From the IMG/VR virus record IMGVR_UViG_3300032236_002285, positions 124,001 to 188,000 of that record: 64,000 bases of DNA, one strand, 5' to 3'. Under the pieces are notes generated by a model. It made no database searches. It was not told the origin of the DNA and saw only the letters and a program-made list of their open reading frames with translations. Position numbers and translations under genes: made by a program. Shown here piece after piece: positions 8,971 to 16,652 of this stretch. Position 1 is the first letter of the stretch; every line of letters starts with the position of its first letter.

Positions 8971-9042
8971 GGTCGGGTGACCGAGTGTTTTAGGTGGAGG
9001 CCTGCAAAGCCTTTAACGGTGGTTAGAATCCATCCCCGACCT
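8971..9042 (+). tRNA. tRNA-Cys (GCA), CCA not encoded
   Basis: Acceptor GGTCGGG/CCCGACC, D stem ACC/GGT, anticodon stem GAGGC/GCCTT with loop CTGCAAA (GCA at 9004-9006), T stem GGTGG/CCATC, discriminator U73 as expected for Cys. Confidence 0.92.
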
Positions 9043-9056
9043 CTAATTTTATATTA

Positions 9057-9669: not shown

Positions 9670-10305
9670 ATGGCAAAGTACCTCAGTTATCGTTATATTT
9701 TTCCTCCACGTCCAAAAAACGCAATTCCAGACTCTGAATTATCTTTCTGGGATAATGGATCTTTGATTGCTCAACCAAAATTAAATGGTTCAAATTGTGT
9801 TATCTTTACAAATGGCGAAAAAACTATTGTAATGAACCGTCATAATCAAAGACTTACTAACTTTAATCTATCTGATAATGAAATCAAAGATATTTATCAT
9901 GGTGAAGGCTGGATGATTTTGAACGGAGAGTATATGAATAAGTCTAAGTCTGATGAAAATAGCCAAGTATTCAATCACAAGTTTGTTATTTTTGACATTC
10001 TTAGTTATAACGGTGAATATCTTGTAGGTAAAACATTTGAAGAAAGAATTAAATTACTTGATAGTCTTTATGGTCAAGTAGATTCTGAAAAAGAATATCT
10101 ATTCAAAGTAACAGAAAATGTTTATCGTGTTAAATCTTATGAAGTTGATTTCAAAAATATTTTTGATAAATTAACTCCGATTGATATGATTGAAGGCTTG
10201 GTGATGAAGCGTAAGAATGCTCGTCTTGAATTAGGTACTTCTGAAAATAATAATACTAAAAGTCAGTTGAAATGCCGCAAAGCAACCAAAAACTATAAAT
10301 ATTAA
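9670..10305 (+). CDS. ATP-dependent ligase adenylation domain, probably RNA ligase
   Basis: Motif I QPKLNGSN, III ILNGEY, IIIa FVIFDIL, IV EGLVMK, V LKCRK; ends without an OB domain. Confidence 0.8.
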   Translation: MAKYLSYRYIFPPRPKNAIPDSELSFWDNGSLIAQPKLNGSNCVIFTNGEKTIVMNRHNQRLTNFNLSDNEIKDIYHGEGWMILNGEYMNKSKSDENSQVFNHKFVIFDILSYNGEYLVGKTFEERIKLLDSLYGQVDSEKEYLFKVTENVYRVKSYEVDFKNIFDKLTPIDMIEGLVMKRKNARLELGTSENNNTKSQLKCRKATKNYKY

Positions 10306-10308
10306 TTT

Positions 10309-10536
10309 ATGCCAAGTAACTGGAATCATTTTTGTCCTTATTGTTTAACAACGACAAAACAAAATATTAAATGTGGTACTTGTGGTCAAGAGACTATGAC
10401 TATATCAAAACAAGCCAGAGTTCCTAAAAAAGGAGCTAGTAAAAAAGAGTGGAAATTACTTTTTGATACATTTCCCTATATTTTGGCTAATGCTCCTAGA
10501 ACAAAATCTTTAGTTGATTTGGGGTTTCAAAAGTAA
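10309..10536 (+). CDS. small zinc-finger protein
   Basis: CPYC...CGTC. Confidence 0.65.
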   Translation: MPSNWNHFCPYCLTTTKQNIKCGTCGQETMTISKQARVPKKGASKKEWKLLFDTFPYILANAPRTKSLVDLGFQK

Positions 10537-10576
10537 TTCTATTAATTTAATATATAAGAAAAACAATCAAGATAAC

Positions 10577-11146
10577 GTGGATAAATTCTCAAAATTAAAG
10601 CCAAAAGACGAATTTGCAGAAGGTAAAGAAAAAGTTCTTTACAAAGATAATCACTTTCAAATTGTTAAATTTGAAGATTGGTCAATCTTAAAAGAAAGAG
10701 ATGCGGTTTGTTGCATTCCTTATTTGATTGAAACAAATCAAATAGTTTTGAGATATGAATATGTTCCTACTTTCAAATATGCTGATGGTCAAGAATATCA
10801 TGTTACTTTAGTATGTGGTGGTATAGAACAAGGTGAGTCTGTTGAGAAAGCCTTGAGAAGAGAACTTGAAGAAGAAGCTGGTATTGTTATAAGAGACGAT
10901 TTTCAATTTGAAGAAGAAATGAAGCCACTTTTTATCAATAAGGCTACTGCTAATAAATATTATCCATTCCTTATTCCCTTGAATGAAAGAGATTATCACG
11001 AGGTAGTTGCTAAAGGTGATGGATCTAAAGAAGAAGAACTAAGTAAGTCTGTAAAAGTTGATGTTAAATATATCAACTCACTTAATCCATCTGATTTAAT
11101 AACAGATTATATGCTAATGAAACTTAAAGAATATCTTAAACCATAA
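10577..11146 (+). CDS. Nudix hydrolase (ADP-ribose pyrophosphatase-like)
   Basis: GGIEQGESVEKALRRELEEEAGI; likely GTG start 10577, downstream of AATATATA 10549-10556. Confidence 0.88.
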   Translation: MDKFSKLKPKDEFAEGKEKVLYKDNHFQIVKFEDWSILKERDAVCCIPYLIETNQIVLRYEYVPTFKYADGQEYHVTLVCGGIEQGESVEKALRRELEEEAGIVIRDDFQFEEEMKPLFINKATANKYYPFLIPLNERDYHEVVAKGDGSKEEELSKSVKVDVKYINSLNPSDLITDYMLMKLKEYLKP

Positions 11147-11152
11147 AAAACT

Positions 11153-11178
11153 AAAAACCCACTCTAAAGTGGGTTTTT
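11153..11178. terminator. bidirectional intrinsic terminator
   Basis: AAAAACCCAC-TCTAAA-GTGGGTTTTT between convergent genes. Confidence 0.85.
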
Positions 11179-12512
11179 TATTTTAAGTATCTTTCTAAGT
11201 CAGATTTTATTTCACTATTAAGTAATTTTGAATCTACATCACCATAGTCTGAAAAGTTTGGTTGCATTTCATAGGTAAAATATTGTTCACCACACCAGTC
11301 CTTGAATATATCAAATAAACTATTATCCTTTAGTCTATCTGCATCTTCGTTATCTATCCAGTCATTGCTATAAGGGATAGTATAAAATGTATCAAGTTCT
11401 TGATACTCTTTTCTTGTTTGATTTCCATCAGCATCTTTAGTTGTATAGTATTTAGTGACTTCTCTTTTTTCTTTTGTATATGTAAATTCCTTTTCAACTA
11501 TCTCATCAAACTCATTTAGAATTTCTTGGTAGTTAGCATCAACATGAGCATTCATTTCCCAATCTCCAATAGTTTGTTTAACCTCTTGACAGATTTCAGA
11601 ATTTTTACATAGTTTTTTTAATGTATCATAATATCTTTCTTTTAGTAAATAGTTAATAACTTCTTCTTCTGATTTACCTTCCAAGTTTTCATTTTCTGAT
11701 TCTGATATAAAATTTTCTAAACCACCAACTTCTTTAATCATAGCTTTGACTAATAGAATTCCATTTTCTTTATCTAATGTATATTGAAACATTGATGATG
11801 TATCTGGTTGATAATCAGAACCATAGTAATTATCATACATATTTTCTTCTCCGTTTACTAAAATATCTTTATAACTTGACTTTCTTGATAACATAATATC
11901 AGACATGTCTTCTAGATTAACTTCAACATAAACTTTACCTTCTTTGATAATAGCATCTGACCAGTTGTAATATTTTACAAGTTCTTCTTCAGTGAATTCA
12001 AATGTATCTTTTGATTTAGCAAAAATAGCAATATAATCATTTGCTTCTAATAATTCAGGCTCACTGGAATTCCAGTTATCTGTAAAAAATAAACCACCTT
12101 TAATTTCTACACCATCTATATCGCCAATATTACCATCCGCGTCGTGTATTGATACTTCAGCATTTGCTTCTTCTGCTATAATTGAACAAGCAAATTGAAA
12201 TGTAGAAGTAACATCATCGTTTTTAATTTTTTGTCCTTTATGAATGCTAATCCAGTAAGAAGGTATAACTTTATCACCAGCTTTTACTTTATCAGTAAAA
12301 ACATCTTTTTCACTTTCTACCCATTCTCCATTTTTATAAGCACCTCGTTTAACTTTTTCTGAAAATCCAAATTCTACTGAAACAAAATATCCAGCATCTG
12401 TTATTTCTAACATATAGTCGGTGATATCTTCTTCGGTTAGTTTCCAAAGAGTTTTCTCTTCTATTTGCTCTTTAATAGATTCTTTAATAAAGTCTAGATA
12501 CTTTTTAATCAT
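11178..12512 (-). CDS. acidic hypothetical protein with MIKKYLDFIKE N-terminus
   Basis: 444-aa ORF; TATATATA 4 nt upstream. Confidence 0.8.
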   Translation of the reverse strand: MIKKYLDFIKESIKEQIEEKTLWKLTEEDITDYMLEITDAGYFVSVEFGFSEKVKRGAYKNGEWVESEKDVFTDKVKAGDKVIPSYWISIHKGQKIKNDDVTSTFQFACSIIAEEANAEVSIHDADGNIGDIDGVEIKGGLFFTDNWNSSEPELLEANDYIAIFAKSKDTFEFTEEELVKYYNWSDAIIKEGKVYVEVNLEDMSDIMLSRKSSYKDILVNGEENMYDNYYGSDYQPDTSSMFQYTLDKENGILLVKAMIKEVGGLENFISESENENLEGKSEEEVINYLLKERYYDTLKKLCKNSEICQEVKQTIGDWEMNAHVDANYQEILNEFDEIVEKEFTYTKEKREVTKYYTTKDADGNQTRKEYQELDTFYTIPYSNDWIDNEDADRLKDNSLFDIFKDWCGEQYFTYEMQPNFSDYGDVDSKLLNSEIKSDLERYLK

Positions 12513-12523
12513 AGTCTATATAT

Positions 12524-12556
12524 AAAAAAAGAGAGACTATTTTGTCTCTCTTTTTT
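12524..12556 (-). terminator. intrinsic terminator
   Basis: A7-GAGAGAC-TATTTT-GTCTCTC-T6. Confidence 0.85.
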
Positions 12557-12576
12557 AACTGTTCGCTTATTTAATT

Positions 12577-13524
12577 TTAGATTTTACTTAGTAATTCTGC
12601 TTTCTTTTCAGAAAACTCTTCATCTGTTAAGATACCTGCTGAATGTAAATCGCCTAATTTTTTGATTAGTTCAATTACTTCATCAGATTCTTGTTTAAGT
12701 ATGTCTTTAAGACCTATTTTTTTCACATCTTTAACTTCTGCTGGCTTTCTACTTTCAGGTAAAATTTGGATAATAGTAGAAGCAATATAATGCTTTTCAA
12801 AGTCTATATCAACTTCAGTGAATTTTTGATTAGAAGCTTCACCTTTTTCTACTCTACCTGTTTCAACGGAATTGATAGGGGTCATATTACTTGATAGAGA
12901 ACCATATGTTTTTGATAAATCAACATCAGAAGTGTAACTACAATTTACAGCATTGTTACTTGAGTAATAAGCATTTGTTGTAGTTGTAGAGCCTATAATA
13001 CCTGATCCGTTTGTTGTTAAGCAACCACTATAAGTTGGAGTTGTTGTTCCAAACCAAACACTAGGTCTGTAGTAAGGATAAGACGGATAGGTTGGGTAAT
13101 AAACCGGGTACCACTTTTCAACAATGATTTTATCAAATTTTGACTTCCAGTTATCTAAAGTAATAACATCTTCTTTATAGAAGAAAACTTCTAAAAGACC
13201 ATTGTTCTGAGTAGCATCTAATGCTTCTCCAGAGTTTTCAATTTCGTAAGTTGAAAATTTGAATTTTTTTCTATCGTCAATAAAGCAGTCAAGATAAACC
13301 CTTTGTCCTGGTTTTACTACTAATCCTGTTTTTGAGATTGATTGACCGTTTAATTTAATATCAGCGAGTACTGAAACGGTTAGTGGGTTAAATAATTCGA
13401 TTTCGAATTCGTCTCCATCAGTTAAGAAGACTTTCCCATTTTTAATTGATTTTCTCCCTCTGTCGTTAGGAGATACAATCCAAGCATTTGGCTTGGAATT
13501 GCTACTTGCAATTGTTTTTGCCAT
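12577..13524 (-). CDS. hypothetical protein with C-terminal SHOCT domain
   Basis: C-term LIKKLGDLHSAGILTDEEFSEKKAELLSKI is a SHOCT pattern. Confidence 0.75.
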   Translation of the reverse strand: MAKTIASSNSKPNAWIVSPNDRGRKSIKNGKVFLTDGDEFEIELFNPLTVSVLADIKLNGQSISKTGLVVKPGQRVYLDCFIDDRKKFKFSTYEIENSGEALDATQNNGLLEVFFYKEDVITLDNWKSKFDKIIVEKWYPVYYPTYPSYPYYRPSVWFGTTTPTYSGCLTTNGSGIIGSTTTTNAYYSSNNAVNCSYTSDVDLSKTYGSLSSNMTPINSVETGRVEKGEASNQKFTEVDIDFEKHYIASTIIQILPESRKPAEVKDVKKIGLKDILKQESDEVIELIKKLGDLHSAGILTDEEFSEKKAELLSKI

Positions 13525-13637
13525 AGTTATTCATTTTTATTTTATCCTATATCTTTGATTCATTTCTAAATCTCAAAGGCATCCTGATGATACCCGACAT
13601 AAGTGTAGCGAACAGCTAAATTATATATTGAAAAACT

Positions 13638-14171
13638 TTATGCTTGTTGTAAATTTGTTCCACAATTTGGACAAAACTTATAATTATTGTTGACTGAACC
13701 ACAATTATAACAATATTTAACATTACTAGCAGTTGGTGAAATGGTAATATTTTCTGTTTTTTCCATATAGATAAAATTTGTATTTGGATATACTTTATCT
13801 CTTTTACCTTGTATAGTAATTTCTGGATTGTAGTCTATTCTATACACCCATGGACTTTTTATCCATCTTGTAAAAATATTTGTTTTTTGGTCTATTTCAT
13901 TTCTATCATTACCATTTATATAAACTATTATTTTAGAGGCGTTTGTCTTTTCTATCAAACCACCACTACCTGTTAAAATATTGTATAATGTACCCATTGT
14001 TGAAAATACTTCAGAGTTGTCAGGTGTGCCACTTACTAAATTAAACTCTAAAGTCCATAAACCAGATCCACGAGTAGTCTCAACCAATCGTATTGAGTAT
14101 TTAGTTCCGTTATCAGATGTAAAAATTATTACATTTGACCATAAAAGAGATTTATCTATTGTATAAGACAT
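13638..14171 (-). CDS. hypothetical protein with C-terminal double zinc ribbon
   Basis: YCYNCG...FCPNCGTNL. Confidence 0.75.
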   Translation of the reverse strand: MSYTIDKSLLWSNVIIFTSDNGTKYSIRLVETTRGSGLWTLEFNLVSGTPDNSEVFSTMGTLYNILTGSGGLIEKTNASKIIVYINGNDRNEIDQKTNIFTRWIKSPWVYRIDYNPEITIQGKRDKVYPNTNFIYMEKTENITISPTASNVKYCYNCGSVNNNYKFCPNCGTNLQQA

Positions 14172-14198
14172 AAATTATATATTAAAAAATCAACTCCA

Positions 14199-14230
14199 TT
14201 TGTTTTTTACTAATAAATGTTGTATATTTG
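14199..14230 (+). promoter_or_regulatory. Bacteroidota-type sigma70 promoter
   Basis: TTTG 14199-14202, 20-nt spacer, TATATTTG 14223-14230. Confidence 0.75.
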
Positions 14231-14254
14231 TATATAATTAATAATTTAGATAAA

Positions 14255-15481
14255 GTGGATATAAAAGAAAATATAATTTTAGAAACCTTCCTAAGACTTA
14301 CTAGTCGTACATATCCTCATGGTAGTGAGGATGTGTTGGTAGAATCCATGATTGAACAAGGTATTTTTCCAGTAGATTTACAAAAAGATATACACGGTAA
14401 CTATTTCTATAAAATAGGTGAGTCAAGAACTATATTTGCTTCACACTTAGATACCGTTAGTAAAGAAGAAACTGAGGTTGTTCATACATTTGATGGTGAT
14501 ATTATTGGTACTGATGGTAAGACTACCTTAGGTGCTGATGATAAGGCGGGAGTTACCGTTATGTTACATTTAATGAAGAATGGTATTCCAGGTCTTTATT
14601 ACTTTTTTATTGGTGAAGAAGTTGGTTGTATTGGTTCTGGTTTAGCTTCTTCAATGTCTATTCAAGACTTCAAAGGTAAATATGATAGAATTATTTCTTT
14701 TGATAGAAGGGATGTTGATTCTGTTATTACTTATCAATCATCAACAAGATGTTGTTCTGATGCTTTTGCTGATGCTTTGGCAAAACAATTAAATTATTCC
14801 GGATTAAAATATAGAAAAGATGAAGGTGGTGTTTATACAGACTCTGCTGAATTTACTTCTATTATACCAGAGTGTACTAACTTATCTGTAGGTTATTACA
14901 AAGAGCATACTTTTAACGAGACTCAAGATATTAAACACCTTGAAAGATTAGCTAATGCTTGTTTATCAGTTGATTGGGAAAATCTTCCAACTGAAAGAGA
15001 CATGACTAAAAAAGAATATCGCTCTTATGGTTCATATAACTATGGTGGTTATAAAAACTATTCTAATTATGCAACACCTGCTACCAAATCTAATGATTGG
15101 AGAAGAAGAGATTATGGATATCACGATGATTGGTATGACCAAAGCACAAGTAGTTGGGTTACAGATGATGATGCACCAATAGATAATAGTGTAGATGATA
15201 TTGACTGGGAAATTGAGTATGGTAAATACAAAAAAACACGCAGAAAAAATAAAGGTAAAACTTATTTTGATAACGGATCTGGTGGTTTAGTTCCATTCAA
15301 AGAAGCAAAATATCCTAACTATCTTGGTGATAAAAATTATTATGATGGTTTGATTGATAAAATTGTCAAAGATGATTTAACAAGAGAAGATTTAGAAATT
15401 GTTAAAGATCAATATTTAGATATGACTAAAGAAAATGATAGAATGTTTTACCAATATCTTTTAGGAAATATTATCGACTAA
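14255..15481 (+). CDS. M20/M28 family metallopeptidase with low-complexity Y/D-rich tail
   Basis: ASHLDTV, LGADDKAG, GEEVG, SFDRR, YTDSA, NLSVGYY..H; probable GTG start 14255. Confidence 0.85.
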   Translation: MDIKENIILETFLRLTSRTYPHGSEDVLVESMIEQGIFPVDLQKDIHGNYFYKIGESRTIFASHLDTVSKEETEVVHTFDGDIIGTDGKTTLGADDKAGVTVMLHLMKNGIPGLYYFFIGEEVGCIGSGLASSMSIQDFKGKYDRIISFDRRDVDSVITYQSSTRCCSDAFADALAKQLNYSGLKYRKDEGGVYTDSAEFTSIIPECTNLSVGYYKEHTFNETQDIKHLERLANACLSVDWENLPTERDMTKKEYRSYGSYNYGGYKNYSNYATPATKSNDWRRRDYGYHDDWYDQSTSSWVTDDDAPIDNSVDDIDWEIEYGKYKKTRRKNKGKTYFDNGSGGLVPFKEAKYPNYLGDKNYYDGLIDKIVKDDLTREDLEIVKDQYLDMTKENDRMFYQYLLGNIID

Positions 15482-15683
15482 AATCAATAATATCAGAAGA
15501 TTTAATAATTTCATCAGGAGCATTTTTTATTTCAGAATTTGGAACATTATGGCTAACTTTGTAAGAAACTTTAGATATTTTCTCAACAATTTTAACAGGA
15601 GTAATCATGTCATTGTACCAGTATTCTATAAGAACGATGTCACCTTCTTTATAAAACGATTTAAATTCTAATAAAAACTTCAT
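15471..15683 (-). CDS. small SH3/KOW-like protein
   Basis: GDIVLIEY...VKIVEK...YKV; divergent from a shared TATATATA. Confidence 0.5.
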   Translation of the reverse strand: MKFLLEFKSFYKEGDIVLIEYWYNDMITPVKIVEKISKVSYKVSHNVPNSEIKNAPDEIIKSSDIIDFSR

Positions 15684-15698
15684 AAAGTATATATAAAA

Positions 15699-16652
15699 AT
15701 GTCATTACTTATTTTTGATAAAGAAATGCTTGAGTTTCTGAATCTTGCTCAAAGAGATTCAATTATTGCTGCCTTGCTTTTACAAGGTAATTCATCACAT
15801 ATTAATGATGAAGGTAATTATATTAAAAGAGTTGATGATGAAATAGATGCTGTTTCATTTTTGCCTAAATCTAAGTATGAAAAAGTTGAGGATCCTTGGA
15901 ATCAAGGTCGTGTTAAAATAAAAGTAGGTAGATTTCTTAGAAAATTCCTAACTAGCTTTTCAATTAAAAACTGGACTATAAGTGACGCTATGATTGAAAG
16001 ATTTGTTAATCTTTACAAGTCTTACTTTTCAAGAGATATTTCTAAATTAAAGATTGTTGAGGGTAATGATATTCCTAAGTATTACTTAGAAGAAAATTAT
16101 CACACTTTTAATGGTAATACTGCTGGATCTCTTTGGAATTCTTGTATGAGACAAAGAGAAAGAAATAAGTTTATGAAACTTTATGCCATCAATCCAGAAA
16201 AAGTTAAAATGTTAATTTTCTTTTCTGATGATAATAAAGTAAGAGCAAGAGCACTTCTTTGGCAAGATGTTAAAGATCATAAGGATTCTATCAAAAGTTA
16301 TAAGTTCATGGATAGAATTTATTATGTATATGACCATGATATTAACTTCTTCAAAGATTGGGCTAAAGAAAATGGATATCTTTGTAAATGGGAGCAAAGT
16401 GCTAAAACTGAAATGTATTTTGATGATGGTAGTGGAAAATCAGTTACAAAAGATTTATATGTTGAGTTAGACTCTAATGGTTTACTTTACTTTCCTTACT
16501 TAGATACATTTAAGTTCTTTAATGATGGAAAAGGTAGATTTTCAAATTCACAATCATATAATTTTGACTATATTTTAGTTCAAAGTAATGGTGCTGTTGA
16601 AAGAGAACAAGAGCCTGAACAGGAATGGGATGAATCATATGATGAAGATTAA
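15699..16652 (+). CDS. conserved phage protein (SCM / RALLW / DRIY / PYLDT family), paralogue of 45745-47154
   Basis: LWNSCM, RARALLW, FMDRIY, FPYLDT shared with the 471-aa ORF. Confidence 0.75.
   Translation: MSLLIFDKEMLEFLNLAQRDSIIAALLLQGNSSHINDEGNYIKRVDDEIDAVSFLPKSKYEKVEDPWNQGRVKIKVGRFLRKFLTSFSIKNWTISDAMIERFVNLYKSYFSRDISKLKIVEGNDIPKYYLEENYHTFNGNTAGSLWNSCMRQRERNKFMKLYAINPEKVKMLIFFSDDNKVRARALLWQDVKDHKDSIKSYKFMDRIYYVYDHDINFFKDWAKENGYLCKWEQSAKTEMYFDDGSGKSVTKDLYVELDSNGLLYFPYLDTFKFFNDGKGRFSNSQSYNFDYILVQSNGAVEREQEPEQEWDESYDED

Follow-up and report, generated by a model that had tools for sequence, protein, structure and literature searches.

Covariation supports a selected helix between the predicted 5' and 3' ends of a phage mRNA

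In a 476-kb freshwater phage genome, the predicted messenger RNA of one gene of unknown function pairs its very first bases with a stretch just before its terminator. This helix and a folded three-helix leader behind it are kept by compensating mutations in dozens of related phages. The comparison indicates that both structures are selected at the RNA level and are not a chance repeat. Confidence that a selected, RNA-level closing helix exists is high. Confidence in the wider reading, in which the helix protects the mRNA ends or controls decay, is moderate, and this role is inferred by analogy.

The window is the whole stretch of DNA that was analysed, 64,000 nucleotides long, and corresponds to bases 124001-188000 of a 476,236-bp virus record with 30% G+C. 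The nearest public relatives are uncultivated phage genomes of 634-735 kb (LR745206, LR756502 and others). The sequencing runs that contain it are mostly freshwater metagenomes. Some of the neighbouring large ORFs match phage tail-fibre and virion-protein families. The features of the locus, all on the minus strand, are as follows.

13622-13635 (-): promoter-like motif TTTTTCAATATATA, a T-run plus TATATA at 13627-13622
13617 (-): predicted transcription start, the fifth nucleotide after TATATA
13607-13617 (-): 5' arm AGCUGUUCGCU
13546-13603 (-): leader three-way junction, with P0 at 13603-13596 and 13553-13546 (CUUAUGUC/GAUAUAGG), the P1 hairpin at 13595-13577 and the P2 hairpin at 13572-13557
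13525-13545 (-): A-rich unpaired linker before the start codon (AUAAAAUAAAAAUGAAUAACU)
12577-13524 (-): coding sequence of 315 aa, a predicted beta-sandwich (residues ~13-118 plus 219-256) split by a disordered low-complexity insert (133-215), with a C-terminal SHOCT domain (287-312)
12557-12567 (-): 3' arm AGCGAACAGUU
12524-12556 (-): intrinsic terminator, made up of an A-tract, GAGAGAC, an AAAAUA loop, GUCUCUC and a U-tract

The first-pass annotation described a 14-bp inverted repeat with one G-U pair that encloses the gene, and this repeat is present. On the mRNA-sense strand, UUUAGCUGUUCGCU at 13620-13607 and AGCGAACAGUUAAA at 12567-12554 form 14 pairs, one of which is G-U (13616 with 12558). 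The upstream Zn-ribbon gene stops at 13640-13638. The 5' repeat starts 1 nt after AATATATA (13629-22) and is followed by a 96-nt leader and an ATG at 13524. The 3' repeat lies 9 nt after the TAA stop (12579-12577) and directly before the hairpin GAGAGAC-AAAAUA-GUCUCUC followed by U7, beyond which is the TATATA of the next gene. The leader hairpin GGTATC/GATGCC proposed in the same annotation is also present and covaries. One correction is needed. The outer UUU/AAA (13620-13618 with 12556-12554) is probably not part of the RNA helix, as it lies outside the predicted start and these outer columns pair only erratically in relatives. It probably belongs to the promoter spacer and the A-tract of the terminator. 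The RNA helix in the window is therefore most likely 11 bp (13617-13607 with 12557-12567).

Within this genome alone, the pairing is not significant. A total of 584 ORFs were called, and the best ungapped duplex between the 120 nt upstream and the 60 nt downstream of each was scored. The gene ranks first with a score of 32. However, when each upstream region is paired with the downstream region of a random gene, this score is reached at a rate of 1.15 per 584 genes. The real and permuted distributions are otherwise the same, so end-to-end pairing is not a general habit of this phage. The motif occurs nowhere else in the window.

Chance complementarity in an AT-rich genome is refuted by the homologues. 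Two relatives from an annotated collection and 100 loci from viral and metagenome contigs carry the gene at 35-93% protein identity. A blind search for the best duplex between the upstream region and the first 40 nt after the stop finds a 9-16 bp helix in about 55 of these loci, in 49 distinct arm pairs. The 5' strand begins up to 9 nt after TATAT, mostly 2-7. The 3' strand begins 3-16 nt after the stop and lies 0-6 nt before the terminator. Many arm pairs differ from the window on both strands while staying complementary. These include AGAUGUUCGC/GCGAACAUCU (loci L069 and L074), AGAUGUUCAC/GUGAACAUCU (L093), UGCUGUUACAC/GUGUAACAGCA (L058), GUAACUGUUCGC/GCGAACAGUUAC (L072), UUAUAGCUGAUUA/UAAUCAGCUAUAA (L098) and a 16-bp CAACUGUUCAUAUUUU/AAAAUAUGAACAGUUG (L046). 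Two distant relatives with a Zn-ribbon in place of SHOCT have unrelated arms at the same places, GACCUUGUGGUUG/UAAUCACAAGGUC in L024 and UGCCUUUUACCG/UGGUAAAAGGCA in L105.

Over helix columns -3 to 8, 89.6% of cells are paired. This fraction is 79.2 +/- 1.0% when the 3' arms are permuted among the sequences (0 of 2000 permutations reach the observed value) and 27-43% when the register is slid. The selection of loci required a 5-nt anchor to pair, which inflates pairing in columns 0-4, and the three loci excluded for that reason carry non-transition mismatches. On a maximum-likelihood protein tree of 55 loci, Fitch parsimony gives 25 changes in which both sides changed and the pair was kept, 16 one-sided changes through G-U, 21 losses and 12 gains of pairing. 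The losses and gains sit mainly at the helix ends. These counts depend on a midpoint-rooted FastTree, and the tree and its rooting are approximate.

Two clades lack the 3' arm. In one (L017 type), a terminator directly follows the stop. In the other (L016, L018, L025, L057 and L085), there is no terminator and coding-like sequence follows at once, and the gene may have been absorbed into an operon when the closing helix was lost. In both clades the 5' arm is degenerate, so the arms were lost together. A local 5' hairpin (AAGUU/AACUU) in the arm-less clades is too weak to count as a replacement, at -0.3 to -0.9 kcal/mol. About a third of the family has lost the helix yet keeps the leader and the gene, so the helix is not essential.

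The pattern of change points to the sense RNA and not to DNA. In the core columns, one-sided transitions produced G-U 13 times and A-C twice, two kinds of mismatch that are equivalent on DNA. A binomial estimate gives p of about 0.004. Helix length and boundaries vary, extending inward in L046 and outward in L079 and L084, which is usual for helices and unusual for protein sites. The arm sequences can be replaced entirely, as in L024 and L105. Both arms always lie inside the transcription unit, and the conserved block runs beyond them into promoter and terminator.

A DNA-level element is therefore very unlikely, whether as recombination sites of an invertible on/off segment, the ends of a mobile cassette or two copies of an operator for a co-evolving DNA-binding protein. 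Inverted repeats flanking about 1 kb are typical of invertible segments, neighbouring genes differ among loci, and two sites bound by one protein would also change together. However, none of 57 loci is in the inverted state, as all have the promoter next to the 5' arm, and no strand-switch joints appear in contigs. Among the six ORFs from 10514 to 16652, a Pfam scan, which was not a dedicated recombinase search, showed no recombinase. Three ORFs matched SHOCT, NUDIX and a weak Zn-ribbon, a fourth gave a sub-threshold M20 peptidase match and two gave none. The cassette boundaries listed as a possible role in the first-pass annotation are not supported, as the conserved unit extends past both arms and the motif and gene are single-copy in the 476-kb genome. 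Of the roles listed there, end protection and a regulatory leader RNA fit best.

The position of the transcription start is inferred from promoter geometry. TATATA is the most enriched hexamer upstream of genes in this genome (10.9-fold) and is conserved upstream of the arm in all homologues. It ends exactly 4 nt before the ATG in 40 genes and 5-6 nt before it in 27 more (for example, window 12510-12530 and 14169-14189), which implies a large class of leaderless or nearly leaderless mRNAs. A second class has 16-30 nt between TATATA and the ATG, and a 96-nt leader is exceptional. The gene just upstream has AATATATAATTT-ATG, and the SHOCT gene has the identical AATATATAATTT-AGCUG. By analogy, +1 is the fifth base after TATATA, at 13617. 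In the homologues, this position falls 0-3 nt before the first paired base. A promoter and terminator scan found no sigma-70-type site at the TATATA motif and did not list the terminator. This is presumably because the A-tract pairs with the U-tract and so lengthens the stem. This pairing could also make the terminator bidirectional. A near-copy of the terminator occurs about 264 kb away (genome positions 401209-401243). Terminator stems differ among homologues but stay complementary (GAGAGUC/GACUCUC, GAGGAUC/GAUCCUC and others).

In Logan contigs, relatives of the gene occur in metatranscriptome libraries from four studies. One contig ends 14 nt short of the predicted start. Another (depth 3) bridges the upstream gene and the arm, so read-through transcripts or DNA carry-over cannot be excluded. 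Neither is decisive. No inversion or circular joints appeared in these contigs, which cannot give ends, strand or level.

The minimum-energy folds of the predicted full-length mRNAs (909-1215 nt) of all 47 distinct homologues contain the long-range helix. In the 1094-nt mRNA of the window, the pairs have predicted probabilities of 0.71-1.00. These thermodynamic folds ignore ribosomes and co-transcriptional kinetics. The terminator is predicted as a 13-bp hairpin. It follows the 3' strand of the helix after 0-6 nt in the homologues and after 0 nt in the window, so that the 5' end is stacked beside the 3' end.

The leader is a second finding. Forty-six leaders align well, and RNAalifold gives a consensus three-way junction of 21 pairs, 14 of which show compensatory changes. 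The junction is followed by an unpaired stretch, conserved as A-rich sequence, up to the AUG. In the consensus, 97.6% of cells are paired, against 82% when shuffled and 33-48% when slid. There are 136 doubly changed cells against 40 expected, and no shuffle reaches the observed value on any of the five measures (0/500). An Rfam scan of 12400-13750 at E up to 10 found nothing meaningful. The best hits score 10-24 bits against thresholds of 33-90, and none lies in the leader. A covariance model built from the leader finds it directly upstream of the gene in 89 of 100 loci and only once in the genome of the window. Two additional weak hits (E 0.11 and 0.83), one inside an ORF and one at a gene end with a terminator, are spurious. 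One contig, L012, appears to carry two tandem paralogues. The canonical leader (L012:497-591) precedes the first, and the second (L012:1461-2424) has a different upstream region. A short ORF in the leader (MSGII...) varies from 6 to 17 codons among close relatives, and its changes follow hairpin logic and not codon logic.

The SHOCT assignment holds (PF09851, 31.6 bits against a cut-off of 27). An AlphaFold model based on a 34-sequence alignment gives a confident beta-sandwich (pLDDT above 90) interrupted by a disordered, S/T/N/Y/P-rich insert (pLDDT below 50) and followed by the helical SHOCT tail. The insert (window 13002-13110, residues 133-215) differs greatly in length and sequence among relatives, and a metatranscriptome contig of a relative replaces 86 nt there with 65 other letters. 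Foldseek against the PDB and a VIA-align wide search gave only generic Ig-like sandwiches and helical hairpins, with Z below 7. The ESM Atlas shows virus-only clusters without a function. The family swaps its C-terminal module between SHOCT and a Zn-ribbon (L019-L024, L097, L098, L103 and L105) while keeping the split beta-sandwich. The gene just upstream in the window (13638-14171) also ends in a Zn-ribbon but is unrelated.

The gene is best explained as its own transcription unit, with an mRNA that starts at or within about 3 nt of 13617 and ends in the U-tract at about 12524. The first 11 nucleotides pair with 11 nucleotides of the 3' UTR that lie directly against the terminator hairpin. 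The roughly 1.1-kb mRNA would thereby be closed into a loop, with its 5' end buried in a helix stacked next to its 3' end, much like the terminal stem of a stable structured RNA. Three nucleotides further on, the leader folds into the three-way junction. By inference, the closing helix shields the ends from 5'-end-dependent and 3' exonucleolytic decay, or tunes endonuclease access, so that only complete, correctly terminated transcripts persist. The junction is inferred to be a separate regulatory element, probably a binding site for a protein (possibly the gene's own product) that controls translation from the adjacent A-rich ramp.

Two other RNA-level roles are possible but less likely. In the first, the helix stacked on the terminator is a processing site for a double-strand-specific nuclease (host RNase III). 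The nuclease would trim the ends or cut the monocistronic mRNA out of read-through transcripts, as the stalks flanking rRNAs and the RNase III sites of T7 early mRNAs do. There is no terminator between the upstream gene and the promoter, and the bridging contig spans that junction. The helix plus the abutting 13-bp terminator stem gives about 24 stacked pairs, and the covariation fits this reading equally well. However, the helix itself is only 9-16 bp, which is short for RNase III, and the stack is interrupted by the free ends. The helix begins at the predicted start rather than inside a longer transcript, and no RNase III gene was found in the phage. In the second, the helix positions or stabilises the junction, only 3 nt away, for a regulator such as the gene's own protein, and tunes translation rather than decay. 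The junction is more conserved than the protein, travels with the gene even where the C-terminal domain is swapped, and is followed by the unpaired ramp, a layout that may recall phage translational operators such as that of T4 gene 32. However, clades that lost the helix keep the junction intact, so the junction does not need the helix. There is no evidence from the fold searches that the beta-sandwich protein binds RNA, and no alternative partner for the 5' arm was found in the leader.

A more speculative and improbable reading is ligation of the juxtaposed ends. As no nucleotide separates the closing helix from the terminator helix, the 3' UTR would act as a splint that lays the two ends side by side in a nicked duplex, the substrate geometry of Rnl2-type RNA ligases. 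The phage carries three genes of the RNA-ligase family PF09414. One (window 9670-10305, plus strand, 30 bits) lies 2.3 kb from the SHOCT gene, beside a tRNA-Cys gene at 8971-9043. Two stronger matches lie at genome positions 323970-324443 and 307304-307888. No RtcB was found. The mRNA might be sealed into a covalently closed circle after 5' pyrophosphate removal, giving an exonuclease-proof message.

Pairing between the two UTRs of a bacterial mRNA is known from a handful of single-species cases established by mutagenesis. Here it is indicated in a whole family of genes in uncultivated huge phages by dozens of natural compensatory changes, which suggests a selected design and not an oddity. 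The family offers a clean natural model of how closing an mRNA affects decay and translation in bacteria, and it adds a well-supported structured leader motif that is absent from Rfam. It also marks the beta-sandwich/SHOCT protein as a gene whose dosage these phages may control tightly.

The closest documented case is the Bacillus subtilis hbs mRNA (Braun, Durand and Condon 2017, PMC5737220). In hbs, a helix of about 14 bp forms between the 5' UTR and a 3'-UTR segment just upstream of the intrinsic terminator of a short monocistronic mRNA. Single and compensatory mutants showed that it restrains RNase Y cleavage and affects both decay routes. The complementary segments in the window (11-14 bp) have this placement, as do those of about 55 homologues. 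In hbs, the 5' partner lies inside a structured leader, downstream of hairpin 2, and overlaps an RNase Y site, whereas here it starts at the predicted +1. The hbs helix was shown by designed mutants in one species, and here the evidence is natural covariation across many phages. In Staphylococcus aureus icaR mRNA (PMC3868564), pairing between the 3' UTR and 5' UTR also controls expression. There the 3' UTR appears to mask the Shine-Dalgarno region and provoke RNase III cleavage, which would make it repressive. Here the 5' arm is about 80 nt upstream of the AUG and does not touch the initiation region. Structured mRNA leaders, such as ribosomal-protein leaders, riboswitches and T4 translational operators, share with this locus a covarying multi-helix element in the 5' UTR just upstream of an unpaired initiation region. 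In the terminal stems of stable RNAs, the processing stalks of rRNA operons and the panhandles of segmented negative-strand RNA viruses, the 5' and 3' ends likewise pair into a terminal helix that closes the molecule. Those are generally non-coding RNAs or viral genomes with helices recognised by dedicated nucleases or polymerases, and this is a bacteriophage mRNA of about 1.1 kb.
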